From assembly GCA_965285935.1 (NCBI GenBank), contig CBDIWN010000008.1, positions 372,001 through 436,000 of the forward strand: a stretch of DNA of 64,000 nt. Reading direction: 5' to 3'. This document shows, in pieces, positions 1-41,977 of the stretch. A program made the translations under genes and the position numbers. The notes beneath the pieces are model-generated. The model was not told the origin of the DNA, made no database searches, and worked only from the letters and a program-made list of their open reading frames with translations. The stretch's first letter is position 1. Each line of letters starts with the position of its first letter. Source of the DNA: Ophelia neglecta. Its lineage: Eukaryota.

Positions 1-130
1 ATATGACTGTGGAAATTTTCTGGTTCCCTAAGATACCTTGTTCCTCAGTATACTTTGACTGTCATTGAGTACATTTTACCATTTTTCGTTGTCAAACTTT
101 GAAATATGAAGGTTATCAAAGAAAACATAC

Positions 131-3100
131 AGGCCCTGATATTCTTAAAGCGATCCCTAGCTATGTTTTGTTTCTGCTTGGCCACGTCACATGAACTCAG
201 TTCTCCATTAGGCACGTCCTAAAACAGCAGATTAAGTAATTAATGGAAAAAAGCATGAAAAGAAAGATGAAAACAGAAGGACAAACATCCGTATGATAAA
301 TGAGAGAACACAAATCATATATCATAGCATCGATGCAAAATTAGGTAGCTGGAAAGAACCAATATGTTTTTTAATTCAGACCATCCAACTTTAAGATATC
401 ACACTCGCTGAATGTCTTAAAATGAAGGTTAAGAATATTGGAACATTATTTTATTTTAGTTTCAAATATTGCCCAGTAATTAATAAAGATCTATTTTCGT
501 GGCTAAGCTTGGTTTCTTTTCTGCCGCTAACATATATATAACAAATGACCAGTTATTGAAACCCGCAGTGTATATACAATGAATGTTTTGGGTAATAGTG
601 CGTATGCATGAAACATTTGTCCTTCATTACGCATGTGTGACCCAATGAGTCAATGCCACAACAGTGGTAGTCTAAAAACTGCAGTGGGATAAGACACCAA
701 GATATGAAAGCTTACATGGTGGATCAACCGATGTCATGAACTGTTTGAAGTTTAATTACCAGATAAAAACATTAATAGATACATCAATACCAAACGATAC
801 ACGTAAAGGACGCATAATTTACTCAATGTTTTAATTGGAAACTAAAAGGAGCATAACTCCTGGCCGTTGACAATGGTTGCCTAGATTGAGGGCGCGGTTT
901 TCATTTTCAAAATGCTACTTACTTCAAATTCCTTTTTCAAACCATCCTTAGTGTATTTCCGTGCCCCAATATATACTTCTAGATCATCTTCTTTGACGCA
1001 AGTTCCTTCTTCAAGACGTTTTGTAGCCGGGAAGTCATAGTATATCGTATTAGGGTTCTCATCTACGTTACCTCCAAAGCATGGATTGTCTACTTCCTCC
1101 ACAACTTTCGTTTCGGCGAGTTCATTATCAGGTCCTTTGGAATGGTAAAAAAGAACATTAGTCGCATACTGTCCATAGCACCTGACATGCTTTCTAAAAA
1201 TGACACTATACAGCGAAGCGAGTGTTAACATAAATTGATTTCATATGAAAAAACGAGAGTAGGTACCCGGCACACAAACAATATCATTTATCAAGAAAAG
1301 TCAATTAATTTGGCCCGATACAATCAGGAACCGAAAGCCATAGGCCTGGAATTACTTACCGGAAGGCCTTCTAAATGACGAATAGCTTCTTCCCTTTGGA
1401 GGTATCTCCTCCATTTTAGCATTAGCATTATCTTTCGCTTTCGTGCGTCGTTTCCTATTATGAATTTTCAAACACACCGTTTTGATTGGGTAATGTAAAT
1501 AGCGCTCGTAAGGGTTTTTATTACTCATTAGTGATTACGAAGCACTCTCAGTGTCGATGCTTTCTAACATCATTATGGGATATAATGCGTCTGAGAAACA
1601 ACGTACGGGGTGATAATTTCTTAATTCACCAACCTGAGAAAAACGACAAGAATTACCACCAGGATGGCTATAGTCAGGAACGCTGCTATTGATCCGGTAA
1701 TAGGTCCGACCAGGCTTAACGAAGCTGGGGGATCGACACTAGGTTCTGAAGGATTGCACAATTACGTGAAATGGTGATTGGTTAAGCAGCTGTAATCATG
1801 TTGTTTGCATCTGAAGCACAATGCATAGGTAGTATAAACATCGGCATATAAAGGCAATGTCAACTGCTTTGCGGCACACGAATTCAACGGTTACAAGTTA
1901 ATAAAAACTTCAGTTGTTGTAGTAAATATTATTTGTGACGACAACAAATATGAAATTACATGTGAAAAGGCAATATTATCGACATTTTTTTTATATTGAC
2001 AACAAATAGTTGAGTTTAAAACTGAATTTCAATTCAAAACCTTGTTCCTGTGTGGCTAAAGTAGTAGCGAAGACAGTCGTGTTTTTGAGAGAGTCTTCTT
2101 TTATTCCAGTCAATTGCCGATAAATCTTTAATATGATCCGGTATGTAGAATTGACGGCCAGATTTGTCAATGTCTTGTCATATTGCATAGCAATATTATC
2201 TTCGTTGATTTCTATTGTAAGCGATTCAATATCTGCCCCATTTGCCTCTGATACGGTGATTTTGTAGCCAAATACAGCCGATGTATATAATGGAATAGCT
2301 TTCACGTGTGTCCATTCAATGGTTATCCTGTCAGTTTGAACATTGGTAATGCTGACCTTGTTTATGTCCGGATACTCAACATAGGCTGTTCATATAAAAA
2401 AAGCAATAAGATCATTTTGTTTTCATTAATACATAAACATTACTGTGATTACTTTTATTAGATATATTGATCAAAATTATGTGCAATAAAACTGATTTTA
2501 CATACCTACAGACTGATTACAATAATCTCCAGCATACCATGTATCGTATGGTATCAGCTGACAACCGTGACTACATGCTCCACTGTACTGATGACAAGAC
2601 GTTATGTTATCTATAGTCGCACAGTGAAAGCCACATATGTGATCGCAGGTTATCCCATAAAAACCACTGTGACAGACGCACGTCCCGCTATACCTGTCAC
2701 ACACAGGGTTACCATGCTCACCAAGACACCGATTATTACAGGTTTTATTGCAGTATTCGCCATAAGAACCGCCCTGACACCCATGGGTACAAATCCCATT
2801 CCACTGGTCGCAAGATCCAGAGACTAATTGGTTGAGCGGCTTACAGCCAGAACTGCACTCTGTTTTACAAAATGCTCCCCACCTGGCCCCAAGACAGCCC
2901 TTAGAGCATGTTCCGTTGTTTCTCACACAAACCGATGTCCCATTAACACCATTACAGTGTTCACTGCAGGTTTTATCACATGTCTTTAAGTAGAAACCGT
3001 TTCGACAACCATTATTACAATCTCCTGTTTCTCTGTGACAATCGGGGGACCCATTGACACGATGACAACCATTGCTACATCTGTTCTGACACTGGTCTCC

Positions 3101-6100
3101 AAAGTAAGGGTCCTGACAGCCACTCGTGCAACGTCCATCAGTAACAGAACATGACCGAGAATTAGGCTCCTGACCAATAAGGCAATTCGCACTACATTGG
3201 CTGTTACAATTGATACCGAAATGGTTTATGTCACATTCTGTAATGTAGATTTTAGTCTATACGTGAAGGTTTGTTACGGTTCACCTTGAAACTAGATGTA
3301 ACTGCTCAGACATTGTGTGTTATGTTATCTTCAGTGAATAGTGGCATGATTTGTTAAAGGTTAAAACAGTAACGGGCCTACCTTGGCAGTCCGGGTACTT
3401 TGGGTAGTTCTTGTCGCATATACCGCAGCCAATCATGGGATCGCAAGACTGGCATCGATTTCTGTCACACACTAGAATAACAGGGGAATAGTTAACACAC
3501 ATAAATAGTGACCTGTTGGGCCATACATTTTAACACAACTTTCATAAATCCCGATTAATCGCTTTAACTCTTAATTGTCTTCCCGTGCAAGCCTAAGATC
3601 CAAGTAATTACAGTGGGTTGACGTCAAGTTCAGGAGTGAGTCTGTATTTGTTTATCACCATCTATAATCTGACTATTAATATATTAAGTTAGGGCATTAA
3701 TTGCAATAGTGGCAACAAGGTGTGGGTGCGTTGGTAAATGTATCCCTTATGCAGCAACTATCTATTCAAAATGGCCACAGTCCAATTCAGGAACATACAT
3801 TCAAGGATGACAATGAGTGCGGGTTTTAACATACCAATAGGTTTGTATCCGTGAACTATCACCTGACACTGGGCAAAGAACTGGACTTGATACCCGCCTG
3901 CATTTCTGATAATGGTGACGTATCTGCCGCTGAGGGGTGAGTCACAATATATTGTGTCGCTTCCTGCTTTTGGAACGACTCCTTTATAATTCTTACAGAG
4001 ACTTGTTAAATCACCGTCTGTCTCGGAACCAACTCCAAGGCGAAAATTACCGGTACGACCTGTGAAAAGGTATTCCTGGATACAAATACATTGTCTCCAA
4101 TGACACATTGTCCTCAGAGCGACTCTTGCAGTAACATTGATTCATGTATTGTACAGACGAATATGGGGGTAACTAATAACTAATTAAGAATCAACAAATG
4201 GCGTTTTGCAAAAGGCATGTGTTCATTATCTCAAGTTTGTGTTTTTAAGTAGCTCACAATGAATATAATTCTGCTATTTCGTAAAACTAAACCTGTTCTC
4301 GCAGAAAATATTCACAGGCCTAGTTTGCATTTGCCTTCAATCCCTGTATTAAATGGGAACTCGAATTCATGTGACATCTATTCGTTTTAATGCTAAAATA
4401 TATTAGATATGTAAGTAGCAATACTGGTACTGGTGGTCTATCAAATGCATACACATGAAGTACAAGTTGGAATTCTTTTTTTTTTGCCCATGAGAACAGA
4501 ATGGGAAGGACGAAAACAATTATTAGTAATGATGTGATTAATGCTACAATCATGCGTGGATGTTTCAGGTAAATGTTTTACATTTGTCTCTATCAGTCGT
4601 TTTTCATTTTCTTACTGTAAGATGGAGAATGCTGTCTGTTTAAGATGGTGACACTAACAACTGTGTAGATGTCCTCTAGATCGACGTACCACCAGGCTCT
4701 CTTCCCAGATCCAGCATCAGGATGTGCACAATTAGCTATCGATGTAAAGATTTTACCATCGACGGCCAGATCAGCGGCGAAATTATAAAATTGTCCACTT
4801 TGATATGCCGGCCTTCCCTTCGCTATATTACCTGTTTATACAAAATACTGATAAAACAGTCTGGTCTATTATGCTGTATTTAATCATAGAATAACTTATT
4901 TAGTAAACCACAAGGGCGAAAAGAACGGAAACTACAATTTACCGGCAAATGGATAAAACGATCCTCATAATCAAAGGATAACACAAAACAAGAAATTTAA
5001 AAGCATCATATTGAACCCGATGCATACTATAGAAACATTTCTCTGGTAGGGCATGAATATCTATTTGCATTTCACTCCGGGTCGGACTCCTGAAGAGAAG
5101 GGAAGAGGTTGAGGCATATTGGTTCAGCTAGGGATTGGAAAAAGTGCAGGATGCATGCAAACATTGCTAAACACGTGTAGACCTACCCTCTACCTGCATT
5201 CCTCCCATGGCAATATTATTTGTTCTTTTCAACATTGTCAGGGGCGTTCTGATATTTCATAATATAATAATTATATATTGCATAAAGAAATTGATTATAT
5301 TTTGACTGTTCATGTAAAATGTACGTCATATTATTAAAATGAGACTTATGGAGTGCTTATACCTACACAAATAAGGACTTGAAAGTTAGATAGTCACAGC
5401 GATAGTGTGCCTCATGTGTCTGTTTATTGTTAAAAAGTTTCAGGAAATGATGCAATGGTTAAATGAAACTTTGATAACTATACATTATAACACTTTCAAA
5501 GATACTCTATTTTGACAGTTTTAAAATAAAAATAAACAGAATTTTTTACCGAGTTTACACCCAGGCCCGTCTCTCCGTATGATGGCAGGGTCATCCCATT
5601 CACATTCACCTCCATTGATACAATCTCCTGTCGTCTGATCACAACCCTTGGTACAGTGACAGGGAAATACACAGCCAGCAGTACTCCCAAACCTACACAG
5701 ACCTGAGGGAAAAAGTTCCTGTTGTTAGCTGAAAATATCCGAGGGCACTAACTTGTTTCATCTTTTATTTAATATCTACACTGGAACACTCTGTCAGCCG
5801 GCTGTTCTTCCCAACGGCCCGGATTATGTGAATCAGTTCAATCATACATAAAAAAATATATGATGCAATAGATGCCATTAGATTCTACTACCATGAGCTA
5901 TTTCTCCACCCGAGAAATAATCTCCGTCCGACTCACACTTCATATCAGCCTCCGCAGACGCAATTCATTCCATTTTCGGATAACTTGGATAATAACGTTT
6001 GATCAGTACAAACTTTTTTTCTTCTCATATTCCATTTCCATGCCCACACAAGGGTGTGGGTGGTAATAAGCAGTCCCGTGCCCCTTGTACGGTAAACATC

Positions 6101-6819
6101 CTAATGGTAATACATGGCATGTTTTAATGTGAGCAGCATTGTGACCTTTCATAATTCCCGATAGCTTTATTATATTTTTAAATACAAACGCGTCTTTGAA
6201 TTCTCACTTGTGAGAAGTGACACCTATGCAAAGCTTTCCCCAAAAGCTGCCCCCCCCCCAAAAAAAAAAAGAAAGCGCACCACGCACCTCCCAGGAGCCG
6301 TTTCCTATTTTTGGAAACATCCGCCCCTGGACAGGATTCACGTCTACAACACACCACACGATATTCATATGAATGTGTGCCTTAAGATTCAAAGATCGGT
6401 GAATAGAAAATTTTATATCTATTTCAATGTAAACATTCCGCTTCCAATATGTTATCAGAAGCACTGGCGGGGTACCGAAAGAATAAGGCCCAGATAATAA
6501 TGGTGGGCATGAAATTTGTCAAGGTTTGTGGGACTTTCTGACGTGAAGTGGGTCGTCTTTAGTTATGTCACGATTTTGGTTGTAACTTGTGAAAATATAT
6601 AGTTGACACCAACTGATTTTGATGCGTACTACAAAGTATTCATGACCAAAAAATCATACGTGTAAATCGAATGTTTTACTTAATTAATACTGCCTCGGAC
6701 AACAACAAGGAGATCAAATAATAACAATAAAATAACATCTACTAACCTGTCTGAGAGGTAACTCTTGTAAGAAAAACATTGGAACTGACTAGAAAACAAA
6801 TGTAAATGGTAGGAGACAT
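131..6819 (-). CDS. Gene A: receptor-type protein tyrosine phosphatase with F-type lectin, EGF-like repeats and FN3-like ectodomain (3'-partial; PTP region continues beyond position 1)
   Basis: Hand-built GT-AG exons with consistent phases: 6819-6747 (signal peptide MSPTIYICFLVSSNVFLTRVTSQT), 5702-5550 (EGF-like), 4831-4616 and 4059-3835 (F-type lectin, NIAKGRPAYQS..AVDG..CAHP..AWWYVDL..GRYVTI), 3471-3382, 3237-2506 (6 EGF-like repeats), 2385-2041 (FN3-like), 1745-1634 (TM GPITGSIAAFLTIAILVVILVVFL), 1454-1360, 1134-923, 218-131 (PTP D1 start, AKQKQNIARDRFKNIRA). Exon-for-exon homologous to gene C. Confidence 0.9.
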
Positions 6820-8230
6820 TATCAAAGTGCACGTTCACACACCTCCGTAAGTGTGTTTATTGTGAACACTATGCTTGGCAGAAGTGAGGTTCAGGTATGC
6901 CTACATTCAATACTGACATTTATAAAGATATTTACTTCCTTGTTCCTCAGCGGTCGCCTGAAAGTAAATACACCAGTCCACATCCCGTTGAACAAACATA
7001 AAGAACACGAAGAAAACGTGTTTGCAGTCATGTTATAGATTTTATAAGTTCAACTTCTGTTGAATAATTCTTCGTCATTTAATACTATGCGCCTTAGAAC
7101 ATGAATTTGTAAGTAACGCTATATATATATTACGTCTAATAGATAATGTTGTATGATTGTAAAAATATAATATATTGAATTGGAAGTCCCGTGGGTTGTT
7201 TTTTGAACTTTATTGTTACAATATTAATTCAATCGGATAGTATTTACCCATGGCAGTGACGATACTCATATTCATTAGTTGAATATAAGGAAATAATCTG
7301 TAAGCAATGAAAATAAAAATCATGTAAAAAACAAATAAGGGGACTAAAAGACGTTCTCCATGGGGTTAAATTAAAGCAAATTAAATCAAAGATATACACT
7401 GGGATTATAGATTTTTGCCCGGTGAGGGACGGGATAATAAAGATGAATTAGGCTAGACTACAGACATACATGAAACAATGAACCGCCGGAGCAGGGACAC
7501 GCACTGCTAGGCGAAGTTAGCAATATTCACCACATGTTTTATAAGTACCGGTATTTAAATAAGGCCGTTACCTACATTTATGTCGACTATAAATACAGAC
7601 AAACAAATAAAGCTACTCTAGTGTGTTTGTGGATAAATTATAACATAAATGCAAATAATAACATGAATGGAGATATGATGGCGGTCGATAAAGTCTACAG
7701 GCCAATAGAGTCATAGCCGGTCTTTACATACTTGTTGGTAGAAAAAAGTGTTTTGGGCGTTATGACAGCTGTGTAAAGCACTTTTTGGTGCCAGGTAACC
7801 AACGAAGCTCGCTGCAAAATCACACCTCGTTGAACTTCAGCAATTAATACATTATGTGTGATAACAAGACTCCTACACAAGTTCTTTTTCATGATCGTAA
7901 ACATTTAAATTAAAGTCTTCATTGTTATATGAATAAACGCCTCCCAATTTTCTTTTTCCCATCATGGCAAAGTTTGGTATAATTCTCCTGGATTTGAACC
8001 ATTTTCAAGAGTGTGCCCGTTTAAAAGCATTCCTATCACCTAAAAATCTAGAGCGTGGCATATGATTTCTCAATAAATTTGTCATAATAATTAATGCTAT
8101 TAAATATATAATATGGCAAAAATTCATCCAAAAAAATAATCCATTCATAAATCGTGCCAGGGGTAGCGGCATTTTGAGCAGGGGGGGGGGGGGGGGCGTA
8201 TCTATTTTCTATCTATATATTTGGGGTAAC

Positions 8231-10660: not shown

Positions 10661-12356
10661 AGGTCTCTTACAGTTTTTCTTAAGGCAACACTGAACACGA
10701 TGTGAAATTATACAATAATGCATTTTATTTTCTCATTGCAAGAGATATTAAGCTTATATTTTCATTAACTATTATTTTCTTTACAAGTTTATGGAGCTTG
10801 ATTTATTTATTGATATGTGGGGGTTGTGGCTTTCATTAAGATAAACCCTTGATTATTGTCCCCACCCCCACCCCCATCATGATATACACCCAGTCCCTTC
10901 TTGAAAATATTAATGTTTTTTTTCCTCTTTCCTGTACATGGTTCTCTCCAGATTCCTTGACATAAACAAGCATATAAAACGGCACTTGAGGTATCTGGAC
11001 GGTAACAAAGCCATAATTCAATTCAAAGGTATTTAAGTCTAGCTTCCCCCAATATAACTGTCCATCTGAACTGTTAATGGGCTGTACTATTAAATTCAGA
11101 TGGGTATGTTCAAGTTTGTCTCAAAAGAGACATACATTCATCCGCAACAAAATAAAATAACGAATTCTTAAGTTAGTTAAATTTGCTTTTAAAGTCAAAT
11201 TTCTGTATAATAGGACATAATTACAATTTAAATCCATTACGTCAGTACGTCCTTGGCATGTTTCCAATACAGTCTATAATCATTGATGGTTATAAAGAGA
11301 TTTTTATCGGTATTTTGAGACGCCGCGTATGCAAAGAGTAAATTTGCATCATTTTATATAACTGCCATGGAAGCAATCAGGGACGCCCTTGGCGGAATCC
11401 TGTGACGGATTTAGAAGCTGTGGGTGTCCCCTCTTTACTTTCCCCTCTTGATGTACTGAATAAAAATACATGATGTTAAATATTCTCGTTAACTTTTCTG
11501 GCGGAGGTCCCGCAACGTATTTTTCATTACGTTTTACATTTTCTAGACAAAACTCGTTGGTGAGAGAAGACACCCATTCCACGCCTTGACTATATAGCTC
11601 CCTCCGCCCCCTTTATAAATTTATAGATGTTTGAAGATTCAAACAAGATACCACGAATTTCCTAACGTATATAGTTGGGTGTTCAAGTTTAATGGTTGCC
11701 GTTTGACTTGCCTTGTGGTGAACTATTAGCGATATTGGCCGCACTCTCAGAGGTAGTGTAGGTCGCGGCTAAGGATTTAACCAGCAAGCACAGTTTTAAG
11801 ACCTGCCGAGGTAAGGCGATGGTTTAAGGTTAGTGTCACGGTTTTGGTTAATCTTTTAAGATGTATCGTCTGCTCCGACACGACCTTTGACTTCTGGTCG
11901 TGTCCTCTGACTTCATTTTGGAATAAACAAGACAAAAAGTCCAAATACCCTTTATATATTGTAAGACTAAGATTATGTATCACAGTTTGACCATACTGGT
12001 TACTAACTAACTCTGGTATAAATGTAGGTGGAATAAAACAGTAGTGCTTTCCAAGAATGGTAATGTCGGGTCCCACCCCACACCCACATTAGTGGAAAGA
12101 ACATTCAGGCTGGAATATCAAGTTTGGAGTTTGATTGGAGTTTATATCATTGGATTGAACTAATAGATATATGATTACATGAGATATACTGTTATGCGAG
12201 TCCTGTTTGTTCAAGCACACAACTTGTATATAATACTATTAATGGTAGCATTAATAATCAGCAGTCCATATTGGTAAGGGTGGAATTGATTGCTCAAACT
12301 TAGATGACATTATCGGGTTGCAATCAAAATAATACATGTGTAAGCGGAGTCATTGT

Positions 12357-15300
12357 TTAATTCTTGGCGCCCTCTTGCTGGTCTATATCCTCATAATCAT
12401 TATTTGTATTTAGTTGTTCGATCATTGGATTTCCATCCTCAGTCAGATTAGCTGTAAAACGTAATAAAACATTCCTAAATCCACACTTCATACTTTCATG
12501 AATCAAAGACATGTACACAAAACAATTTTCAAATCAAAATCTAATGACAATGCCCATATTGCAATATTAAGAACCGCCTGTATATGCTTATACTTTATGG
12601 ATATCTGCAACACATGTTCAGCCCATATTACAAATCACCTTTAATACGACAGGAAAAAGTTGTTTGCCGCTATAATTATGAATTATAATTATTAGTGGTA
12701 ACAGGCCATTTCACCTACACATGTAATTCTCACATTGTAACACTATTATATTACGCTATGGTATTAACAAAGTGTGGTATTTCCCAAATGTCGCTTTCAT
12801 TATGAGTTCACAGTGCGTGTAAAATATGTGTTTATTGGTCAAACAACGATGCGCAGTAAATAGGAGAAGAAAAAAAAACTATTATAAAACCAAAGCTTTT
12901 TTTCTGACTCTCACCATAGGGGGAAGGTTGCGGGGATATTTTCTCATATATGTTACAGTCGGATAATTCAATTTCTTGTGTGCCGTGAACCTGGTTGTCA
13001 TTTTGTTGTGAACATTCGTTTGTTAATTGGGTCACCTTTCGTACCCTGCAAAAATGAAAACAACATACTTCCATATTCATTAACATTTAATGTCATCCAA
13101 CACAGTCAATACTACATGCTTATGTGAATATATCTACCAGATTGGGCCTAGAGAAAGTACGTAAACTATTTTCTTTAAACATTTCGAATGGTGGTTTTTA
13201 TTGAAAATAACAAGAAAGCATCTATTTTAGACATCACTTACTTGACAATTAGACAACCACTGATGGTGGCAACAGTGGCAATTACTGCAACAACCGCTAT
13301 AACAATTCCTGCCAATGCGCCCGATGATAGGGATGCATTTTGCCCTTGTCAAATAAATATGCTAAATTGGAATATATGGTAGCTGATATCATACAAGCGC
13401 GGGACTATTCTGCTCTAGTAAACCCTACGTTGTACGCTACAAAGGGGTCTTTGTCATTTGTCTATGGCTACATTTAAAATAATGATTGTGTCTATTAAGT
13501 AACTACACTTTAGACATCACTATCTAGACACAATTTAATGTATAGTCTTTATTGTCAATAAGGGAATTGCCGACGTTTCTTCGACATTTGCAACAAACAT
13601 TATTAGTTTAACATTAAATTCAATAACCTTGATTTTGCGCAGCCAAAGTAGTGGCAAAGACTGTCGCAGGGTTGCGGGAGTCTTCTTTTGTTCCATTCAA
13701 TTGTCGATAAATGTTTAATACAATCCGATATGTGGAATTGGCCAATAGACCTGTTAAAGTTTGACTATATTTCATGGAAGTATTATCTTCTCTGACTGCC
13801 ATTCTAAACGCTTTATCATTTTTCCCATTTCCGTCCGAGGCAGTGATTTTATACCCAAATATAGCCGCTGTATTTAATGGAATAGCTTTCACGTGTGTCC
13901 ATTCAATGGTTATCCGGTCAGTTTGAACATTGGTAATGCTGACCTTGTTTATGTCCTGATACTCAACATAGGCTGTTCAAATAAAAAAGCAATAAGATAA
14001 TATTGCTTACATTAATACATAAGCATAATTGTAATTACTTTTTATATAGATGAAATATTAATCAAAATTATGTCTCAGTGAAATATAACTGATTTTACTT
14101 ACCTATAGATTGATTACAATGATCTCCAGCATACCATGTATCGTACGGTGGTAGTTGACAACCGTGACTGCATGTTCCACTGTATTGGTGACAAGCCGTT
14201 ACGTTATCTACAGCCTCACAATTACTACTACATGGTTGATGGCAGGTTTTGCCATAATAACCACTGTGACAGACGCACCCTCCGCTATATCTATCACACC
14301 CAGGATTACTATGCTCACCAAGACACTGATTAATACATATTTTATTGCATAATTCGCCGTAAGAACCGTCTTTACACCCATAATTACAAATTCCACTCCA
14401 CTGGTTGCAAGATCCAGAGACTAATTGGTTGAGCGGCTTACAGCCCGAACTGCACCTTGTTTCACAAAATGCTCCCCACCTGGCCCCCAGACAGCCCTTA
14501 GAGCATATTCCATTGTTCCTTGCACAAACAGATGTCCCATTAACACCATTACAGTATTCACTGCAGGTTTCGTTACATGTGTTTGAGTAGTAACCGTTTC
14601 GACAACTATTCGTGCAATCGCCTGTTTCTCTCTGACAAACTTTGGTACCATTGACATGATGACAACCATTGCTACATTTGTTATGACACTGGTATCCAAA
14701 GAAAGGGTCCTGACAGCCACTCGTGCAACGCCCATCAGTGACAGAACATGATCGAGAATTGGACTCCTGATCAATAAGGCAATTGGCAGTACATTGGTTG
14801 TTACAGTTTAAACCAAAATGGTTTTTGTCACATTCTGTAACGTAGATTATAGTCAGTAAGTGAAAGTTTGTAATGGTTTACCGGGAAACTGGATGTTATT
14901 GCTAAGACATTGTGTATTATATAATCTCCAGTGAAAAGTAACATGATTTGTTTAGTCTTAGACACTAATGTGCCTACCTTGGCAGTCCGGGTACTTTGGG
15001 TAGTTCTTGGGGCATTTATTACAGCCAATAACGGGATCGCACGACTGACATCGGGTTGTATCACAAACTAGAATGACAGGTGGATAGTTAGCAAAAATAA
15101 AAAGTGATGTATTGGACCTTATCTTTAAACAAAACTTTCATATATCCCAATTCATCGCATTGACTCTAATTTTTTTCCTGTGCAAGCCTAAGGTCGAAGT
15201 AATTCCAGTGGGTGACATCAAGTTCAGGCGTGAGTTTGCATTTGTTTATCACCATCTATTATCTGACTATTTATATATTAAGTTAGGGCATTACTTTTAA

Positions 15301-18300
15301 TGGTGCCCACAATGTGTTGGTCCGTTTGTAAATGTTTCCCTTATGCAGCCACTATCTATTCAAAATGGCCACAATTCAAATCTGGGCCATGCATTCAAAG
15401 ATGAAAATGAGTGCGGGTTTTAACATACCAATAGGTTTATATCCGTGAACTATCACCTCACACAGGGCAAGGTACTGGACTTGATGCCCGCCTGCATTTC
15501 TGATAATGGTGACGTATCTGCCGCTGAGGGGTGAGTCACAATATATTGTGTCGTTTCCTGCTCTAGGAACGACTCCTGTATAATTCTTACAGAGACTTGT
15601 TAAATCACCGTCTGTCTCGGATCCAACTCCAAGGCGAAAATTAGCTGTAAGATCTGTAAAAAGGTATTCCTGGATACAAATACATAGTCCTCAGATCGAC
15701 ACTTACAGTAAACTTGAATCATGTATTGTACAGACGAATATGGGTGTGACTAATAACTAATTTATAAATCAACAAATGGTGTTTGCTTAAGGGCTATGTG
15801 TACATTATCCCAAGGTTGGGTTGACATGTTTTTAAGTAGCTCACCAGACTATTTTGTTGGCGAAGTTTACACTTATAGAATGAATTCTAATAAAATAGTG
15901 GAAGATTTAATACCAAAAACAGTGTGTTGTGGGAAATACCTCTTTACCTTTTCACCACGTATTCACATTGTATGTTAAGCTTGTTTTACCAGTACCGTAG
16001 CTAACAATCAAGGACACAAAATATTTTGTTTTGCGATGGTTGCTTCGCAAATGATTTTGTATTAAAGTTGTATCCTGTTTTAGAGGGAATTATTCACAGG
16101 CCTAGTTTACATTTGCCTTCGACCCCTGTATTAAATGGGAACTCAAACTCATGGGACATCAATTAGTTTTAATGCTAAAATATATTAGATGTGTAAGTAG
16201 CAATACTAGTACTGGTGGTCTATCCAAAGCCATGAGTACAGCATGGGAGGGACGAAAACAATTATTAGTAATGATGCGATTAATGCTAACATCGTGCACC
16301 TAAGATTATTATTCTATTTCTGTCTCTAGATATGGTCATCGTTTTTCTTCTTTTCTTACTATGATATGGAGAATCCTCTCTGTTTAAGATGGTGACACTA
16401 ACAACTGTGTAGATATCCTCTAGATCGACGTACCACCAGGCTCTCTTCCCATGCCCAGCGTCAGGATGTGCGCAATAAATTACCCATGTAACGATTCTAC
16501 CATCGACGGCCAGGTCAGCGGCTAAATTGTCAACTTGTCCACTTTGATATGCCGGCCTTCCCTTCGCTATATTACCTGTTTATACAAAATACTGATAAAA
16601 CAGACTGGTCTCTTATGCTGTATTTAATCATAGAATAAACTATTAAGTGAACCACAAGGGCGAAAAGAACGGAAAATACACTTTACCAGCAAATGGATAA
16701 AACGGATAATACAAAACAAGAAATTTAAAAGCATCATATTGTATGCGATGCATACTATATAAGCATTTCTCTGGTAAGGCATAAATATTTATTTGTATTA
16801 CACTCCAGGTCTGACGCGGGAAGAGGTTGAGGCATTATTGGTTCGGGTAGGGATCGGAAAAAATGCATGCAAACGTTGTTTGACACATGTAGACCCGCCC
16901 CCTTCCTGCATTATAGGTTTTTACAGACATATATGCCATACTTTAGTAATATCACAGTCTTATTCATTGCCATAACAATCATATTTTTGCTATGTATACA
17001 GAGCCACTAGAACACATGCCATCAATGTGCTTAATCAGGGGCCACATTCTTTAAAAATTAGTCCCATGCTTCTTGCTGATTTACACCAAATGACTTCAGT
17101 TTCTCCAATGGCAATGGCAGCATTATCTATTAACTGGTCGTAATATTTTGGCCGAAGTTTGTAGCTATCCATTCCCTTTAATCTTTAATACATAATTGTA
17201 GCTTTGTAGTCCATGGTGTTTCCCTGTCAGATGAACCACCATCAAAGCGAGGAATATAATTGTGTATCATCTGCATATCGACGAAAGTGGATACGTTGAG
17301 GAAAACTTACAATATCCCCCAAAGGGAGTGTGCATATAAGAAACAAAATATGTCCTAGAATACGTCCCTGTTGAAAACCTCACATTTAAAAAAAGTAGGA
17401 TAAGACAGGTCGCTACAAATCTTAACGTTCTCGGTAAGACCACCCAAGTATGATTTAAACCAATTGAGGGCTTCTCTTCCTAAATACATACTTTCAGCTG
17501 TTTACGATCCAGCAGAGTTGAATGATTAATGTTTCAAAGCCGCTGGCAGATCGAGATATATAAAAAGACATGAACAAATTAATGAATATTATTCTGCACT
17601 ATGTTATTGTTTATAGGTTGTCTGGAACGTCTCTCCGAGCTCATTTACAACCAAATGTTCAGACAGCCTCAGGGCAACAGTCTGTTCAGAACAAAAATGA
17701 TATATTTGAATCACAAATGTTGTTGGCCATTATATTTTTGCTCACGCCAGCTTTCTTAATTGTTTTTTTTAACAGCATTCTTCAACATATATGGAAAAGT
17801 ACAACTCTTAAATGGCAAATTTACAATATTTGCATATACTGGTGCTAGTGATTCCAAACATTCCTTTGTCTCCAACATTGGCAGAAGATCCAATTCACAG
17901 CTCTTGTAGACATTTAACGCCTAGCAAAGTTATCCATTCTCCTAAAGTTTCTAGTTATTGTTCTTAGAGTTTGGGCTCTCTTAGGGTTTGATTGAATAAA
18001 TAGGTGTCGTAAGTGCATTCATAAATTCATATATCCCCCTGGCATAGTATTTATTCTTTTCAACGTTGTCAGGGTAGTTCTGATATTTCCTAATATATTA
18101 ATTATATACTGCACATAGTTATTGATTATATTTTGAATGTTCAAGAAAAATGTAAATCATATTATTAAAATTAGAATTACGGAGTGTTTATATCTTATCT
18201 TACACAAAAAAGAACTTGAAAGTTAGCTAGTATTAGCGATAGTGTGCATCAGGTGTCTGCTTGTTAAACGGTTTCGGGAAATGACGTTATGGTTAAATGA

Positions 18301-20712
18301 AAGTTGTTAAGTACACAGTATAACACTTTCAAAGATACTCTATTTTTACCGTTTTAATATAAATATAAACAGAAATTTTACCGAGTTTACACCCAGGCCC
18401 TTCTCTCCGTATGATGGCAGGGTCATCCCATTCACATTCACCTCCGTCGATACAATCTCCTGTCGTCTGATCACAACCGTTGGTACAGTGACAGGGAAAT
18501 ACACAGCCAGTAGTATTCCCAAACCTACACAGACCTGAGGGAAAAATGTCAAGGGAAACATTTAAATGGTAGGACTTGATGTTCGACAAAAACATGAAAC
18601 AAATAAGTATTCCTGAACATTTTCTTAGGGCACCACGGCTTTCTTTGAATCGTAAAAGTTTGCTCCAAAAAGTCGGGCCAAAAAGAAAAACTAATTTACA
18701 ACGAGGAGTGTGGTGGGCCAAACATATCAAACGTAATCTGCGACACATGAACCTACTTATGTAGAAGAATACATCGACGAATTATAAAATTTCATATTAG
18801 TAGTATATTTTGACACAACAGCGTTGTAGCGCTACTAACGTTGTGTGCGTTTGACGAGCGTCCTGTTGTTAGCTGAACGTATCCGAGGGCACTAACTAAT
18901 TCCGTTGAAAGTCAGATATTTCATTTTTTATCAACTATCTTTACCCTGAAGCACGCTGTCAGCAAATTGTTCTTCCCAAGTATTACATGAATCAGTTCAA
19001 ATAAAACAGTTCAAATCAATGACATACATAAAATAATTATATATGATGCAATAGATGCAATTAAATTCTACAACCCTGAGCTATTTTATTTTTCCTTCGT
19101 CCTCCAAACCTCATATCAGCCTCCGCAGCGGAATTTCGTTCCATTTTCGGATAAATCTGTTAATAGCATTTACTCAGTATAAACTATTAATTTGTCTTGT
19201 TTCGTTTCCAAGCATCAAAAGCGCCATACTAGCTTTAGTACTTGTAATAGTAATTGTATTTGTGATCCTTTTTGTGCCTCGGTCAATGCGGCAAACGGTA
19301 TCATTTTTAAAAATACCAAATGAAGCATTGACAAACCATCAATGCGGCAAACAGTATTATTTTGCGGTCAGAACTATGTGCATTTGGTATTATTGTGGGT
19401 CAAACTCGCAGCACAAAAATACCAAATGAAGCACTGACAAACCACCATACAATCCCCTGATTTCCTTTACCTTACTATACCCATAAGAAATATCCAAGCT
19501 ACACAGACAAAAATAATAATTCATCGGTAGCCTACAAAATGAAATATGAATTCAGAAGATTGTCAAACACGATGTTAAACCCACAGAAGGGGACAAAACG
19601 GGATCCGAAATATAAAAGAATCCTCTGAGCCGAAAGGTTCTTATAGCAGTCTTTTGCCTACTTCAAATACAAAGCGGGGTTCCTTAAACATCCAGTACAA
19701 ACATATAATGAGATTTATATCCTGTGTATTCAAGGCACTGTGTGTATAGCCGACAGTAATGCAAATAATCTGAGGCGAACTAATGCTCTTTGTTAAGAGT
19801 CCGGTGGGGGATCTAGAGATTGCCAGGTTCTTTAGCGGGTCTAGTTGCAGTCAAACCCCTTGACGTTGTCAGAGCCCCCTGGAGCAATCTGGCGGATCGA
19901 TAAGTAGTTATACTGTCGGATCTAGAGGTTGTCAGACACCCTTTATAGATTTAGAGGTTGTCAGAGCAACCTTATCACATTTTGTACAAAAGAGTTCATT
20001 CAAGCTGTTAGATATCCTTAATTTATCACGGAGAAATTCCGTTATTCCCGATAGCGTTCTAAGTTTGTTTTCAATAAAAACGCTTCTTTGAAATCTCGCT
20101 TGCGGGAAGTGACAATTATTCCACCCTTTTCCGAAGGCCGCTCCCCACATCCACAACCTGGCGCCGTTTTCTATTTGCGGGACGCAACCGGCCCTGGATA
20201 CAACACAAAACTTTACATACGAGATTGATATTAATGTGTGCTTTAAGATCCCAGGTGTAGTGATTTGATGATTTAAAATCATGTTCATTGGAAACGGATA
20301 CCTTCCCTTCCAATGTGTTTAATGTCAGTGGTGGGGTAGTGAAAGAAGAAGGCCTAGAAACTAATGTTGGGCAAGCAATATGTCAAGATCTGTCTTTTCT
20401 GACGCGAACAGGTCGTCTTTGGCTAGTGTCAGGATTTTGGTTGTAACTTGTGAACATGTATAGTTGACACCACGACGGCAACTGATTTTAATATCATATG
20501 TGTGCTTCAGATGTTTTCTGACTCTATTTCCATACTAATCACTGTTGATCTTTACGGGTTAACAATAAGTTAAAACAACTTTGAATACTTAATAATACCG
20601 CTGCCAACAATAAGGAGATCGAGTAATAATAATACTAACCTGTCTGAGCGGTAACTCTTGTAAGGAAAACACTGGAACTGACCAGCAAACAAATGTAAAT
20701 GATACGAGACAT
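12357..20712 (-). CDS. Gene B: phosphatase-less single-pass F-type lectin/EGF/FN3 receptor (MEGF10/Draper-like architecture) with a tyrosine-motif tail, about 720 aa
   Basis: Exons 20712-20640 (signal peptide MSRIIYICLLVSSSVFLTRVTAQT), 18534-18382, 16575-16360, 15653-15429, 15067-14978, 14834-14103 (open, 6 EGF-like repeats), 13972-13628 (FN3-like), 13344-13242 (TM GALAGIVIAVVAVIATVATISGCLIV), 13045-12915, 12451-12357 (TAA). Exons 1-7 have the same lengths as gene A (73,153,216,225,90,732,345). Phases join with no internal stop. Confidence 0.85.
16990..17960 (-). mobile_element. Decayed L2/CR1-type LINE reverse transcriptase fragment in gene B intron 2
   Basis: Fragmented minus-strand peptides CELDLLP..KECLESLAPVYANIVNL..FP, LDLPAAFET, QGRILGHILFL, and RYADDTQLY (YADD at about 17266-17277). 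Confidence 0.8.
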
Positions 20713-23810: not shown

Positions 23811-26720
23811 TAAGGTGGATGACCCGCCCTAAATAAACGAATGCTCGGCCATTCCGTCAATGCATAGATGGCGAAATTAGATTATGACGTGCGCTCAATA
23901 CAAGGCTGAAGGAAAAAATGGCGCCAAACGCTTATGTAAAGGATTTATGTAGCTAGAGCTCCATATGTGGTTATTGTACAAAACAATGATTGAAAACAAA
24001 CTGATTTGAAACGTTAAGCTTTTGAATTGTGCGAACATAATTACAGATTGTCCCATTTTCCTTATCTTAGTAGGCTACTCTATTCCGCACGTTCATAAAG
24101 CTCTCCGTTGTCCTTTGTTTAAAAAAACCGGCGGTTGTTGCTCATCAACCTAATACTGCCATCGCTTTACACTAAATTATTCAGGCGTCCGCATTTAGGC
24201 TTTCCGTCAAACGATTGTCTGCATTTTAAGTATAAGGGCTTTTCCAGAATTTATCTTCAGGCATGGTGGGCGGCAGCCGTTTTTTGTCCGTGGGTTGGGA
24301 GGCGTTCGCTTTTCCATGTCCGAGGGTAGGGGGGTCTCAGTGATGTCGTGAGCCATCATGAGGATGTATAATGAGACAAAAATATGTCCAGGGGTCCAAG
24401 GCCTCATTATTTTTCAAAAGAACATTTCGCCGCCAATATACCAACAATGAAAACATACGGTACAAAACTTAGATTCATAAACAAAGTGCAAATTCCCTCC
24501 AGGGGCCTATCCTGTCATAATACTGCATGTATCTTATTAAGCCTGAGCATGTAGATACATTTCGCTGACCTACCAATCAGCGGTGATAGTACGGCCGAGA
24601 TTGGTCGCTTTGCAGTTTGCCACGGTGATTACCTGCGAAAGGCGTCTATACCGCTGATTAGAATTGCGAAAAGGAACATTTCGTTATCGGTGTTCTACTT
24701 ACAAGAATGTCCATTGAATTAACTGATAATGTGTTGGACTTTAACCTATAAAGTTTCTAGGCATTTTGTTTACAAGTGGAAAGTGGGACATTTGCTATAG
24801 TCTTCAATTTGTTGTCGTTGTCTGCTGCGGCCCCGGGTACTGCTCATGAGCAAGTGATTGTGTGTGGTGCACGGGGTTTGTGGCGAAAGGCTGCGGCCCG
24901 TTCATTGGCTATGCTCGCTTTGGTTAAAATGTAGTAGATTTATAAATGTATCATTAAACTAAACTGAAATTGTAATGTAAAGTGTAAACCGGTAGCAAAA
25001 TGTATCTGTATGTATAATTATCTTTGTCCAAGGGCCAGAGGCAAATGTCCAATAAAATTATATCTATCTAGCTATAACTAAATGTCTGCCAAAATATAAA
25101 TGCTTTCATTTTCAGAATTGTACAACTAATATTGAATCGGACAAAGCTTGACACATCATTTATTTGAACTATACAAGATTAATACCAATAGGAGGAAGCA
25201 TTCGTAACAGTTCAATCGAACATTGAAAATATATGGTATATAACAGTCATCAGTTTTGCGCATTTACGGTTGAATATATGTCTCAATTAATACCTGATAC
25301 AACGTGTATTTATCCCTTCTGTAAGGGTGAAGACGATATAATAAACAACCTGGCATATTTAAGTTAACCTAAATTGATAATGAGTTGAGGTCTAAGTGAA
25401 GGTTACTTTCCAGGAACGATGACTTTCGAGTAACATGTCTTTTGACTAAAAACAACCGTGGACGAATATAACAGTATCTGACATAAAACAAGCTATTTAT
25501 TAACTCTATAGAAAACGCCATTGCAGCGATAAAGTACACAAATCAACATGTTTGGCCGAGGAGAAGCAAGCACAGTTGAGGCAAATCATATGTTTGTAAT
25601 AGATATGGATAGTAACATAAAAACAGGTGGTAAACATATTATAATTAGAAACCACCGTGCATTATTGACTGCAAAAATACATTTCATATGCTCGATGATT
25701 GATAAAGCAATGGGATTAAAAAACCAAATCATAGCATATTTATTAATGAATATGGTACTTGTAAGTAACAGTAACTTTATAACAACATCAAACAGACGCG
25801 ACAATCACTTCCTGATGAGTTTATTTCTTGGGTTGTAAACATCCATTCTCGCATTATTAGTGGATTGTATGTATATTGCGTATCGACTGAGGGAATAAGC
25901 ATCTTGAGAGCAAAGCAACATTACCAACGATCCCAAAACATAATGTATATCGTCGTTAAGTTAATCACGTACAAAATCTACGTGTTAATCTAATTGGTGT
26001 ATTGTTCCTCTATCATTTATGTTCAAACTTTACATAAGGTTGGAGAATTGTACACTATATTTTGAATTGATTATAATTTCTCATGAATACTAAGTAATTC
26101 GTCTTGTCTCAAAATAAATTTGTACAAAAAAGCTGTGGTAAATACAGAGATTAGTTCGTATTCATTTGAAATTATGCTTGCATAGCCTCCCATCCCTATC
26201 CAACTGATTATTATAGTGCTTCCCAGAAAATTATAATGGACTTTAAAAGTTTCTTTTGGCATTGGAAATGCCATTGCAACCCCCCTCCCCCACTCAAAAA
26301 CATGTTTTATTTTCCTGATATTAAGAAATACATGGGTTCTAAAAAGCCCAGATTTCTGTAAATTTAATGTTCAAATGTCACTGCGTATAAACGTTTATAT
26401 CAGATTTTCGCCTGATATTTAGATGCAATAAACTGTGTACAAATATAATATTGTACAAATACTTTATACCGAATTGAATCCTTTAATTTGCTCATACTAC
26501 TCTATGGCGTACTGAATTGTTAACTTCAAACTCTTGATAACAACGGCGATATTAAATAGTTTCTTATTAAATAATTATCAATCATATTGAAAGGAAATAA
26601 AATATCGAATCAAATCAACCAGTTTGAATTTGATATTACAAAGCAAGCTAACACGCAATCTATGTATGAGAACAGTGGCTTCATTCTAATCATCTTAAAG
26701 GAATGTAGTAACGAAGTTAA

Positions 26721-28632
26721 CTACTTAAAGGTTCCATAGAGCTTGTTTCTTGTAATATACTCCATTGCAATACCATGTAGGAAACGATACTGGTCCTGTA
26801 AAGAAAAGGAAACATAGATCTTACATGTGGCGATATCTTGATATACATGTATTGGATAACAGATGTATAAATAGTGCACTATCATTGAATATTAATGCTG
26901 TTGAATATAGACAGACCTTTTGAAATTGTAAATTATTTTACAAATACAGTAACCTTTGGTACAAATCTTGAAAATCCTTCCGGCAATGCATCGATTAGTT
27001 ATGTTACTTACCAAATTGTTGACAAATTGTTCTCTGTGTAGAGATACAACCCGCACAGCAAGAAAGACGTCCACCTCGCGCTCTTCCTGCAGCTTCTCCA
27101 GCATATAATGTGCCGCACATATCATTCCACTACGACTAGCTCCGTCTCTGAGAAATATAGAAGTAGTAAACGACAAGGTAATTAGGGTTTGGGATGCTTT
27201 AAAGAGATCAATACTCTCCTTTATCACCTTACCAGGCGTGACCACAAGGCAATGAGAGTTCAGATGAATTTTTAGAGAGATGTTACATGGGGTTGAAGCT
27301 AGCTTATTTATGTGTGTGTTAGTCCTTTTATTACAAACAGTGGTGATGTGCTTATAACTTACTTGCATTGGATAACAATTTTTCCAATGCCAGCTTGTTG
27401 TTGACTCTTCTTAATGCGTTCTAACAAATTTAAAGTGTCCTCCAATCCTGGCAGATCCTGGTTATCTGGACGTTGTTTGAACAATATATGGCAGACTCTT
27501 ACTGGCTGGTTCTGGAACTTATTATATAACCGATAGTAATAAAATAATGCTGTAATCAAACATAATATATTTCGGTTGACGTATAATAGTTGCCATATGC
27601 AAAACGATCCATGTGCTTAACTAATATTTATATTCAAACTTTATATAAGGTTGGAGAATTGAACTGTATACTTTGAACTGAACAGTGTGTTTAATATCGA
27701 GAGACTAACACTTGAGGAAAATGACACAATGAATGTTCTTTCTTCTATGGCATCTTTCTCATCTTCCTTTTGTGAATCGATGCGCACCTCAAGGTCACCA
27801 AACTGCCTTACATCACCTTTCTCAAAATCCAAGTACTTGGGAGAATCCTGATGATCGAAATATATGGATCCAGTCAGTTTTATATAATTAGACATATGTA
27901 AATTCGATAATGTAACTTCTCGCTACTCGAATGGCACTCTTGGCTTGAAAGAAACACGTTCATCTACCTCAGAGTCAGGGGACGATGTTTCTAAAGTAAT
28001 CACAGTGTGGCACTTTTGTTCGTACACCAAACGCCAGAAGTCAATGATAGTATCAGGTAATGGCAATTGGGTCGCAATAAATGTCTTCTCCGAGAGATAA
28101 CTCTAATAAATCGTGGAAGAAACCAAGAATATTCCTACTATTAGTGGATTTAGTTATATCGGTTGGGTACTTACGAAATAACGAAAACAGTGAAGTTATT
28201 AATTGAGAATTGTCCTCTAAATCAGCTGGAAATCATCATTAAAGATATCCTCACTAATACGAAGATATATATAAATAGTTATATAACAATCTAAAAGGGA
28301 GAAAAGCTGAATTTAGGTTGTGATCACTTAAACTTATACATACGTTAACCAAAATGGCATTGATATAGTCATTTGTGCCCGGACATCTTGTAGATAGACA
28401 CAACCTGTGTTTATTATCTATAGAAGAAAAACAATAGCACACAGATGGTTGCGTTAACTAATTTGATTCAGCAAACGAACACACATTTCCATAGAGGACC
28501 AATATGCATATCCGTTATCTATACCCATGTACCTGGCACTATATCAGCATCTCGATTCTTCCGATTGTTTTCCTTACTCAGAGCAGTAAGTTTGTCAGCT
28601 GACTTCTTGTGTTGTTTCATTTTGGAGAGGAT
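26721..28632 (-). other. PTP domain D2 of gene C, probable pseudophosphatase
   Basis: [14 protein letters not shown] and [21 protein letters not shown] are present. WPD is replaced by RPD and the signature reads VIQCKDGASRSG. Confidence 0.8.
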
Positions 28633-40600: not shown

Positions 40601-41977
40601 CGACTAAAAATTAATATTTACACTAACCTCAAACACGTGGAATTTCATATATGTAATTATAATAGTGGGTTGCATATTATAGATTAAGTTGTATGAAGTT
40701 TGAGCACGCTCTCTTAACGGGTCAGCGGTGTTGCACTAAAGTCTGTTTCTTCTCGAAAGTAAGCCATCGCGCGAAAGCGGGAGTCACTGCCCTTTGCACT
40801 TGCACGACAGAAATGCAATGCTCGCGTATGTCTAGCCTTACCGCACCCAAGAACAAGATTGAGACAAATGTTTCAAACTAGACCAGATATTCATAGATAT
40901 ATATTCTTTAGAACAATAAAAATGGAGTCATGAATACTGAAGCTTGACAAATTTGCCTTTCAAAGTATTAAGCTATTTAGTCGTTGACCTACTTCCAATA
41001 CAAAGCGATGATCATTGACTGTGTATTATAGGATGGTAATGGTTTTTGCACATAGCGTGTATGCACATACTTTATGTATAGAATTCACCACTTTGCAAAC
41101 AATCAGTCATGCATTTGACTAAGATTCCATGGACGGATTTAAAAGTTGGCGAAGCTCATTCTTGCACCAAGAGACCATTTTAAGCCGTGAAATATATAAC
41201 CTTACTGGCAGAGGTCACTAATATTTTTACACCGCTTTATTACATTTACTTTATAATGGTAATATTATACCTAGCTTATGGGAGGTCAAACTTTAGCCAT
41301 GCCAAATCCCGGACAGTTGCCCCCCCCCCCCCTCTCCCTACTTCGTTTCTCACTATTGAAGGCTTCTGCCCCGTGTAACCCTCGAGGGCCGCAACTATAC
41401 CTTTCCTTTATTCTCAATTTAATTTGTACATTTAGATTTTGCGTGTGATGAATATGATTTTTCCTCAAAATAATTGTTAAGGTAAACTCTTAGCGATCTT
41501 TGGGTAGTCGCAAGGGTACTGGAGGTCAGGAATTATAAATTGCGGAGCAAGCAAATGATTCAGAACCATTCACCTCGACTGTTGCGAAGGGTATGGTCTG
41601 TAATAAGTGTTACGATTTTGGTCAAGATTTGAAGATGTATCGTCGGCTCCGACGCGGCCACATATTTCTGATACCTTTAGGTATCATGCATCACAAAAAT
41701 TCAACATAAAATATAACCGTTAAGCAACTCACCCTTTTATTATTTTTACATATGACAAGAGAGTAGCTCATTTAATATCGTCTTGTATTGTGTCGCAAAC
41801 AACACATCCACTCATTTGAATAATAAATCATGCCGCTGCCAACAACAACAATATTGTGTAATTGTAATACACATAATTATAGTTAAGATACATTTACTAA
41901 CCTGGTTGGCCAACAACTCTAGTTGTAAGAAAGACAGTGGAACCGACTAGCAAACACACATTAATCAGAGGAGCCAT
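26721..41977 (-). CDS. Gene C: tandem-domain receptor-type protein tyrosine phosphatase with F-type lectin/EGF/FN3 ectodomain; 25 exons, about 1411 codons, one in-frame TAG at 34895-34893
   Basis: Exons 41977-41902 (signal peptide), 38993-38841, 37644-37429, 36394-36167, 35893-35807, 35593-34547 (9 EGF-like repeats), 34257-33910, 33660-33546 (TM), 33373-33288, 33168-32954, 32337-32250, 31982-31912 (DYINAS), 31254-31215, 30944-30847, 30718-30590 (KCAQYWP), 29852-29707 (WPD, IIVHC), 29601-29466 (SAGIGRTG), 29118-28969, 28632-28533, 28417-28344, 28102-27968, 27847-27710, 27511-27363, 27147-27012, 26795-26721 (TAG). All GT-AG with consistent phases. Confidence 0.9.
29070..32337 (-). other. PTP domain D1 of gene C, catalytic motifs intact
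   Basis: [63 protein letters not shown] and MVQSLSQYEF occur in the canonical order of classical PTP motifs. Confidence 0.9.
32049..32140. repeat. Short tandem repeat, about 26-bp unit (GTAAAATATGNCTCGTGAAATGTATA), about 3 copies
   Basis: Visible in gene C intron 11. Confidence 0.7.
36600..36770 (+). mobile_element. LINE (CR1/L2-group) ORF2 C-terminal fragment
   Basis: [29 protein letters not shown] resembles the IRPVLEYACxVW motif of these elements. Confidence 0.7.
36862..36990 (+). repeat. About 130-bp dispersed repeat, second copy at about 40591-40730
   Basis: GTATCGACTAAAA..CACTAACC..GTGGGTTGCATATTATA..TTGAGCACGCTCTCTTAACGGGTCAGCGG is present in introns 3 and 1 of gene C. Confidence 0.8.

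Follow-up and report, generated by a model that had tools for sequence, protein, structure and literature searches.

Gene B, on the minus strand of a 64,000-nucleotide (nt) stretch of the Ophelia neglecta genome, probably belongs, as an intact gene, to a large family of type I receptors that is organized in tandem arrays and shares a conserved multi-phosphotyrosine docking tail, and is a member in which that tail has been rewired. The stretch, hereafter the window, comprises positions 372,001 to 436,000 of contig CBDIWN010000008.1 (GenBank assembly GCA_965285935.1; C16:372001-436000 in the contig names used here), and all positions below refer to it unless another contig or locus is named; the genome searched amounts to 762 Mb. 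The gene B model is complete, with 10 exons, GT-AG borders throughout, 2163 nt, 720 amino acids (aa), and zero internal stops. It predicts a type I receptor consisting of a signal peptide, a Cys-rich module, an F5/8 type C (F5/8-C; F-lectin-like) domain, epidermal growth factor (EGF)-like repeats, a fibronectin type III (FN3) domain, a transmembrane (TM) segment, and a tail.

The tail of gene B and its splice junction

The tail is encoded by the last two exons: exon 9 (12915-13045), membrane-proximal, contains YEKI (12948-12937) and the tyrosine of YANL (12918-12916), while exon 10 (12357-12451) supplies the remaining -ANL, the segment NPM-I-EQL (its isoleucine, at 12422-12420, is tyrosine in paralogs), YEDI (12395-12384), and the stop codon. 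A preliminary description of this DNA had joined exons 13045-12915 and 12451-12357, and both direct reading and the scripted model (profile searches were made exon by exon, and the spliced model was checked for an open frame by script) confirm an in-frame GT-AG join, with acceptor TTGCAG and donor GTGAGA bordering the first exon, and acceptor TTACAG and a TAA stop at 12359-12357 bordering the second. YANL (12918-12915 plus 12451-12444) indeed arises only across this junction, as that description had stated: the tyrosine codon at 12918-12916 is followed by G (12915) and CT (12451-12450), which together encode alanine, and then by Asn-Leu, such that TAT-G joined to CT-AAT-CTG reads Tyr-Ala-Asn-Leu.

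Conservation of this junction was assessed among paralogs. At least 47 genome matches to the penultimate tail exon were found, located on C16 and within C7:89.1-91.1 Mb; 47 tail loci were fetched, 43 of which have both tail exons, yielding 38 unique tails when identical copies are counted once. In all 43 loci with both exons, the donor is TA[TC]-G/GTGAGA, the acceptor is ..ACAG/NN-AAT-CTG, and neither the phases nor the stop position differ; the junction codon is alanine or valine in every paralogous copy. In the seven paralogs that were measured, the two exons are invariably 131 and 95 nt long, whereas the introns span 414-470 nt, and the exons are without indels and mostly better conserved than the introns; the last exon of gene B is 85-94% identical, again without indels, to paralogs of its own subfamily. 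Because splice sites, phases, and exon lengths are kept among paralogs, use of the 12915/12451 junction is considered very probable from this comparison. Were the junction unused, intron retention or other splice sites would give a different C-terminus, or gene B would be silent. The available sequencing runs leave room for this alternative: the three public runs, all from one sample, include none recorded as RNA and thus offer no transcript support for the junction. Over 12101-18100 they consist of DNA contigs that cover introns (e.g., a 1061-nt contig at 12535-13595) with zero splice joints, and these contigs, possibly from the same sample as the assembly, show no difference in the penultimate exon of gene B. 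An unused junction is nonetheless very unlikely, given that paralogous loci, despite introns of varying length, conserve the splice sites and their phase, the lengths of the exons, the open frames, and the position of the stop.

The spliced tail measures exactly 75 aa after the TM segment, in line with the earlier estimate of roughly 75, and its three tyrosines (residues 679, 689, and 709 of the 720-aa model) each have I or L at +3. They are arranged as YEKI-x6-YANL followed by YEDI, with a proline-rich linker of six residues, SPQPSP, between the first two. The consensus of the ITAM (immunoreceptor tyrosine-based activation motif) is YxxL/I-x6-8-YxxL/I, and the tail has the requisite two YxxL/I 6-8 (at most 12) residues apart. 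When the tail was shuffled 200,000 times, all three tyrosines fell within YxxI/L in 0.12% of cases, the ITAM pattern arose in 0.26%, and the two coincided in 0.02%; these motifs are thus not explained by chance. Inheritance from a conserved family motif, as read from the paralogous tails, accounts for two of the three tyrosine sites.

The family tyrosine pattern and its alteration in gene B

Across the family, the tail reads YE[KE]P-x6-Y[AV]NL-x7-(NPM)YEQL-x5-YE[DE]I and includes four tyrosines: Y1, within N-V-Y-E-[KE]-P; Y2, within G-Y-[AV]-N-L over the splice junction; Y3, within N-P-M-Y-E-Q-L; and Y4, within Y-E-[DEN]-I. Y1 and Y2-x-N-L are each present in 38 of the 38 unique tails. Y3 is found in 33 of 38, being replaced by asparagine in four and by isoleucine in gene B, and Y4 in 35 of 38, where the exceptions are two frameshifted copies and one Y-to-C change; the N-P of NPxY is present in 30 of 35 tallied tails. 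Thus, the preliminary proposal that the three tyrosines of gene B are conserved stands for the residues themselves (Y1, Y2, and Y4) among paralogs, but Y1 as part of a YxxI motif is not conserved. The canonical ITAM that the family conserves is the Y2/Y3 pair, YxNL-x7-YEQL, which overlaps NPxY. By motif type, YxN is associated with Grb2, YxxP with Crk/Abl, and YEEI-like sites with Src-SH2 domains; on this knowledge of motif partners, the family tail also holds a candidate Grb2-type YxN at Y2, a Crk/Abl-type YxxP at Y1, and a Src-SH2-type YE[DE]I at Y4.

Several measures describe the constraint on these tails. Both TAT and TAC are used at the family tyrosine codons, a synonymous variation, and the ratio of nonsynonymous to synonymous substitution rates (dN/dS) in the tail is ~0.32 among closer paralogs. 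The tail core retains ~60% identity even across the subfamilies furthest apart, compared to only 32-34% for the FN3 exon. Individual copies depart from the pattern: the tails with Y3 replaced by asparagine are L022, L030, L073, and L075; the last exon is frameshifted in L009 and L022; L008 has a one-codon deletion ahead of Y4; Y4 is changed to cysteine in L078; and the FN3 exon adjoining L011 has a stop codon. The variant and damaged copies of the family likely include pseudogenes.

Gene B differs from this pattern at two sites. Isoleucine at Y1+3 occurs in one of the 38 unique tails, that of gene B, where it is encoded by ATA (12939-12937), whereas the other tails have CCN or GCT codons (proline in 29, alanine in 5). 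Gene B is also the sole tail with isoleucine in place of Y3, corresponding to TAC-to-ATC at 12422-12420, and each of the two changes needs two nucleotide substitutions. As a result, gene B reads NPM-I-EQL: NPxY is gone, the family Y2/Y3 ITAM is broken, and the YxxP of Y1 is gone as well. No close copy of gene B exists in the genome, the best other tail exon being 72% identical at the aa level. The earlier designation of YEKI-SPQPSP-YANL as an ITAM is thus correct as to pattern, but its Y1+3 isoleucine is private to gene B and the family pair is Y2/Y3. Because that isoleucine is unique and Y3 is lost in gene B, the YEKI/YANL pair is derived and gene-specific. Similarly, S-P-Y-A-N-L was originally also read as an ITIM (immunoreceptor tyrosine-based inhibitory motif), and gene B does match [S/I/V/L]-x-Y-x-x-[I/V/L]; however, the match rests on residues particular to gene B and its nearest relatives, since most paralogs have A-G-Y or A-A-Y, which do not fit.

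Besides the transcript result given above, several points weigh against gene B being a rewired signaling receptor with a conserved docking tail. All evidence of conservation is drawn from paralogs within a single assembly, which are not independent, and some copies are possibly assembly duplicates. Word-index protein searches with the two tail-exon open reading frames gave zero matches, and hence no orthologs from other species; an exhaustive HMMER protein-database search with the FN3 exon gave seven matches, of which only one was a relative, a fragment of 203 aa whose 1340-nt contig has no tail exons. Compared to its nearest paralog, L007, gene B has a tail dN of 0.107 and dS of 0.067 over 54 codons (vs. 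dN 0.073 and dS 0.132 in the FN3 exon), a result that also fits relaxed constraint; with such small counts, the tail substitutions fit relaxed constraint or a change of function alike. The four other tails without Y3 (Y to N) gained no YxxI at Y1. Finally, YxxI/L and NPxY are endocytic signals too, and a sorting role for YxxPhi and NPxY may coexist with signaling.

These points bear on what the altered tail might do. One possibility, held tentatively, is that YEKI-x6-YANL is a working ITAM that, when doubly phosphorylated, would recruit a Syk/Shark-type kinase, the ITAM having slid one tyrosine toward the membrane. Its fit to YxxL/I-x6-8-YxxL/I, its rarity in shuffled tails, the double-nucleotide substitutions at both of the motif positions that created it, and the presence of Shark-like and Syk-like genes in the genome are consistent with this possibility; the restriction of the Y1+3 isoleucine to one of 38 unique tails, the lack of such a gain in the four other Y3-less tails, and a proline-rich x6 linker at the short end of the consensus argue against it. 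Those four tails rule out the idea, also considered, that the family generally compensates for a lost Y3 by shifting the motif. Roughly as likely as the relocated ITAM, and likewise doubtful, is that gene B lacks an ITAM and is a weak, inhibitory (with SPYANL as an ITIM recruiting SHP-like phosphatases), or decoy receptor, or is drifting under relaxed constraint. Here, the S-x-Y-x-x-L fit, an array of SHP-like genes at C2:96.40-96.66 Mb, the excess of dN over dS in the tail relative to the nearest paralog, and the loss of Y3 also in L022, L030, L073, and L075 are in favor, while the intactness of all ten exons and the retention of Y1, Y2, and Y4 with their flanks are not, and the dN/dS comparison is based on very few changes.

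It could also be that the tyrosine motifs are chiefly sorting signals and that the family comprises endocytic or scavenger lectin receptors not coupled to kinases. YxxI/L also constitutes a YxxPhi sorting signal, bound by AP-2, and NPxY is an LDL-receptor type internalization signal, bound by endocytic adaptors with phosphotyrosine-binding (PTB) domains; each YxxI/L in the tail qualifies, and the ectodomain resembles the lectin/scavenger type. Nevertheless, sorting as the chief role is unlikely: it does not need the acidic flanks (YE[DE]I and YEQL), the invariant asparagine at Y2+2, or the exact x7 spacing, and the phosphatase-fused twins described below make sense for phosphotyrosine signaling, although the two readings are compatible. 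On the reading preferred here, gene B most likely still signals via phosphotyrosine, with YxN and YEDI kept and the set of partners changed, as judged from its motifs.

Receptor architecture, phosphatase-fused twins, and SH2 enzymes

The predicted gene B ectodomain has a 24-aa signal peptide, 57 cysteines, and 12 N-glycosylation sequons ahead of the TM segment. Exon 1 (20640-20712; this and the following exons are all on the minus strand) contains the start codon and signal peptide, ends at donor GTTAGT, and forms a short block conserved with the region upstream in gene A. Exon 2 (18382-18534) encodes the N-terminal Cys-rich module, which is 63-91% identical (aa) to the paralogs compared and has zero Pfam matches. 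The putative F5/8-C (F-lectin-like) domain is split between exon 3 (16360-16575, first half) and exon 4 (15429-15653, second half); taken as half a domain, exon 3 scores slightly below cut-off with both PF22633 (25.3 bits, cut-off 27.8) and PF00754 (22.2 bits), whereas the equivalent lectin exon of gene A scores above cut-off, at 36.3 bits, with an F5/8-C type model. A small Cys-rich module (exon 5, 14978-15067) is followed by six 6-Cys repeats of ~40 aa each (exon 6, 14103-14834), in which every cysteine is invariant in the alignment and which are EGF-like by Cys pattern only. No EMI or EGF match to exons 2, 5, or 6 was found in Pfam, even at E values up to 10, and a PDB sequence search with the Cys-rich repeats gave zero matches; an AlphaFold2 model of these repeats, built from a 12-sequence paralog alignment, had a mean predicted local distance difference test (pLDDT) score of 42.7, too poor for fold comparison. 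Exon 7 (13628-13972) encodes the FN3 domain (Pfam PF00041, 26.8 bits), and exon 8 (13242-13344; donor CAA/GTAAGT) encodes the stalk and a single hydrophobic TM segment of ~24 aa followed by basic KVRK, such that the tail is predicted to be cytoplasmic. Two spare bases of exon 8 and G13045 of exon 9 together encode lysine, hence the KVRK with which the tail begins.

Two side observations concern the ectodomain-coding part of gene B. At the start of exon 4 (15653-15640), gene B reads N-L-T-A-N-F-R-L, whereas genes A and C read x-R-T-G-N-F-R-L; the arginine beside the conserved N-R-x-D stretch of the lectin-like domain is replaced and an N-glycosylation sequon is gained, possibly altering the sugar-binding site. 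In addition, a reverse-transcriptase-like fragment (..YADDTQLY..) is located at 17245-17379 on the minus strand, in the intron between exons 2 and 3, within a stretch absent from gene C and L036 in their alignment with gene B.

The two neighboring genes, arranged head to tail with gene B, pair the same ectodomain plan with a different cytoplasmic part. Gene A (26700-41870, ends approximate) and gene C (1-7446, running off the window start), both on the minus strand, follow the gene B exon plan through FN3; beyond it, they have a TM exon unlike that of gene B, followed by a juxtamembrane exon and exons encoding tyrosine phosphatase, and are thus twins of the receptor protein tyrosine phosphatase (RPTP) type. 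In gene A, Pfam Y_phosphatase matches in two separate domains, and WPD and HCSAGxGRTG motifs are present in the Y_phosphatase domains of both genes. From exon 2 to mid-FN3, genes B and C are 82-92% identical (nt) where alignable, introns included; identity drops to 68% at 13800-13501 and to background (~50%) after 13500, beyond which gene B instead matches short-tail genes at 84-93%. The possibility that tail and protein tyrosine phosphatase (PTP) exons are alternatives of one gene was rejected for this window, given that the region downstream of gene B lacks PTP-type exons and gene A contains none of the tail type.

Genome-wide, at least 145 related FN3 exons were found, and the C16/C7 cluster includes 22 close phosphatase-type members (the type numbers at least 22 genome-wide) and 31 short-tail members. 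An FN3 tree of these 31 short-tail and 22 PTP-type genes requires at least six tail-type switches, compared to a mean of 17 with shuffled labels, and at least two switches are forced by strongly supported branches. As far as gene content indicates, the layout is that of candidate paired receptors, namely, related ectodomains on different cytoplasmic parts in one cluster; opposite signaling outputs of the short-tail and phosphatase types are expected from domain content only. Many family genes are near-identical on the 963-kb contig C16 and on C7:90.45-91.08 Mb and, within C16, occur in both orientations; C16 may in part be an alternative haplotype or an inverted duplication.

Among 86 exon matches in an SH2 scan of the genome, four loci were examined. 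L060 (C8:29348500-29351800) encodes a tyrosine kinase preceded by two SH2 domains with ankyrin repeats between them, which is the Shark architecture; its 695-aa open frame (242-2326, minus strand) is uninterrupted and contains no introns, in contrast to the receptor genes with their many exons. At L062, a pair of SH2 exons separated by 1 kb is accompanied by a tyrosine-kinase exon ~6 kb downstream, which makes the locus a Syk-like candidate. In L063, phosphatase exons come after a pair of SH2 exons (SHP-like), and the locus belongs to the tandem array on C2; L061 is a p85-type PI3K subunit. The array (C2:96400000-96665000) numbers approximately nine or more genes, an expansion that would suit a large load of ITIM/ITAM-type tails. 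These loci show just that the needed partners exist in the genome.

Two further features of the window lie apart from the receptor genes. A unit of ~5.3 kb occurs twice in tandem at 43900-53100 on the plus strand, with near-identical frames at 47149-47775 and 52361-53071 and at 43914-44177 and 49197-49460, whose coding parts appear sulfotransferase-like by eye. At 62100-62730, also on the plus strand, an open frame of a repeated unit (..PTCTWLSILPVPGSPSYLYLALH..) is an apparent coding-looking tandem repeat.

Proposed mechanism and related systems

With gene structure, motifs, family conservation, phosphatase-fused twins, and SH2 enzymes observed in the assembly, we infer phosphorylation, partners, and the direction of signaling as follows. 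A ligand, perhaps a glycan given the lectin-like domain, would cluster family receptors, after which Src-family kinases would phosphorylate the tail. A tandem-SH2 kinase (Shark-like or Syk-like) would then dock on Y2/Y3, with adaptors of the single-SH2 or PTB type binding at the remaining sites. Phosphatase-fused twins with near-identical ectodomains, brought to the same ligand, would oppose this signaling. Drosophila Draper is triggered by the exclusion of a transmembrane phosphatase from the contact (PMC6219719); were the phosphatase to share the ectodomain of the receptor, it would presumably not be excluded in this manner. In gene B, the changes from CCN to ATA at Y1+3 and from TAC to ATC at Y3 removed YxxP as well as NPxY and the second ITAM tyrosine, and they created YEKI, leaving Y1/Y2 as the only ITAM-spaced pair. 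That Y1/Y2 works as a new ITAM is conceivable, though rather less likely than that it does not.

The closest parallels in tail composition are Draper, CED-1, MEGF10, and Jedi-1, which are likewise of type I, have numerous EGF-like repeats rich in cysteine, and combine NPxY with an ITAM or YxxL in a short tail. Src42A phosphorylates Draper, whose ITAM binds Shark and which also recruits Crk and p85 (PMC6219719). Motif types for these partners are present in the family tail described here, and the genome encodes Shark-like and p85-like proteins. The ITAM spacing of Draper is x11, vs. x7 in the present family and x6 in gene B. In contrast to CED-1, Draper, and MEGF10, no EMI domain or Pfam-recognizable EGF repeat was found in gene B, and F5/8-C (F-lectin-like) and FN3 domains are added; moreover, the family consensus contains the NPxY and YxxL/ITAM combination typical of those tails, but gene B, with NPM-I-EQL, does not. 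The likeness is one of motif types. A second invertebrate case is the oyster CgIgR, a single-pass receptor with an ITAM in its own tail that binds CgSyk and promotes ERK phosphorylation (PMC6994640). The single membrane pass and the classical ITAM within the receptor itself recall the present family, but CgIgR has five Ig domains, was studied as a single gene, and is not described with a phosphatase-fused twin.

In genomic layout, the family is similar to the KIR, LILR, SIRP, and Siglec types and to Botryllus FcoR (PMC12582321), which also form multigene clusters with near-identical ectodomains on opposite tails, and whose tails swap motifs between genes or alleles. Unlike in vertebrate paired receptors, the presumed inhibitory partner here holds phosphatase domains itself, rather than an ITIM recruiting SHP, and the activating motif would be located in the tail of the receptor, not in an adaptor. 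Genes A and C are also comparable to RPTPs of the CD45 and Ptp69D class in having an ectodomain, a TM segment, and two Y_phosphatase domains; gene B differs in that it lacks phosphatase exons and has only the ectodomain in common with them, up to the FN3 exon. A fuller reading, doubtful when taken as a whole, is a paired system in which one lectin-like ectodomain is placed on either a Draper-like tail or phosphatase domains, and in which gene B is a case of the ITAM sliding along the tyrosine ladder, with the choice of partners altered.

Knowledge of ITAM signaling outside vertebrates rests on few worked examples, namely, Draper/Shark and oyster CgIgR/Syk. Dozens of receptors with a compact tyrosine ladder and phosphatase-fused twins would, if borne out, constitute a new form of activating/inhibitory pairing. 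Although real, the ITAM-like pair of gene B is derived and private to that gene, and it should not stand for the signaling motif of the family. Together with the Y-to-N tails, gene B provides natural variants that may show which tyrosines recruit a tandem-SH2 kinase and which recruit PTB or single-SH2 partners.

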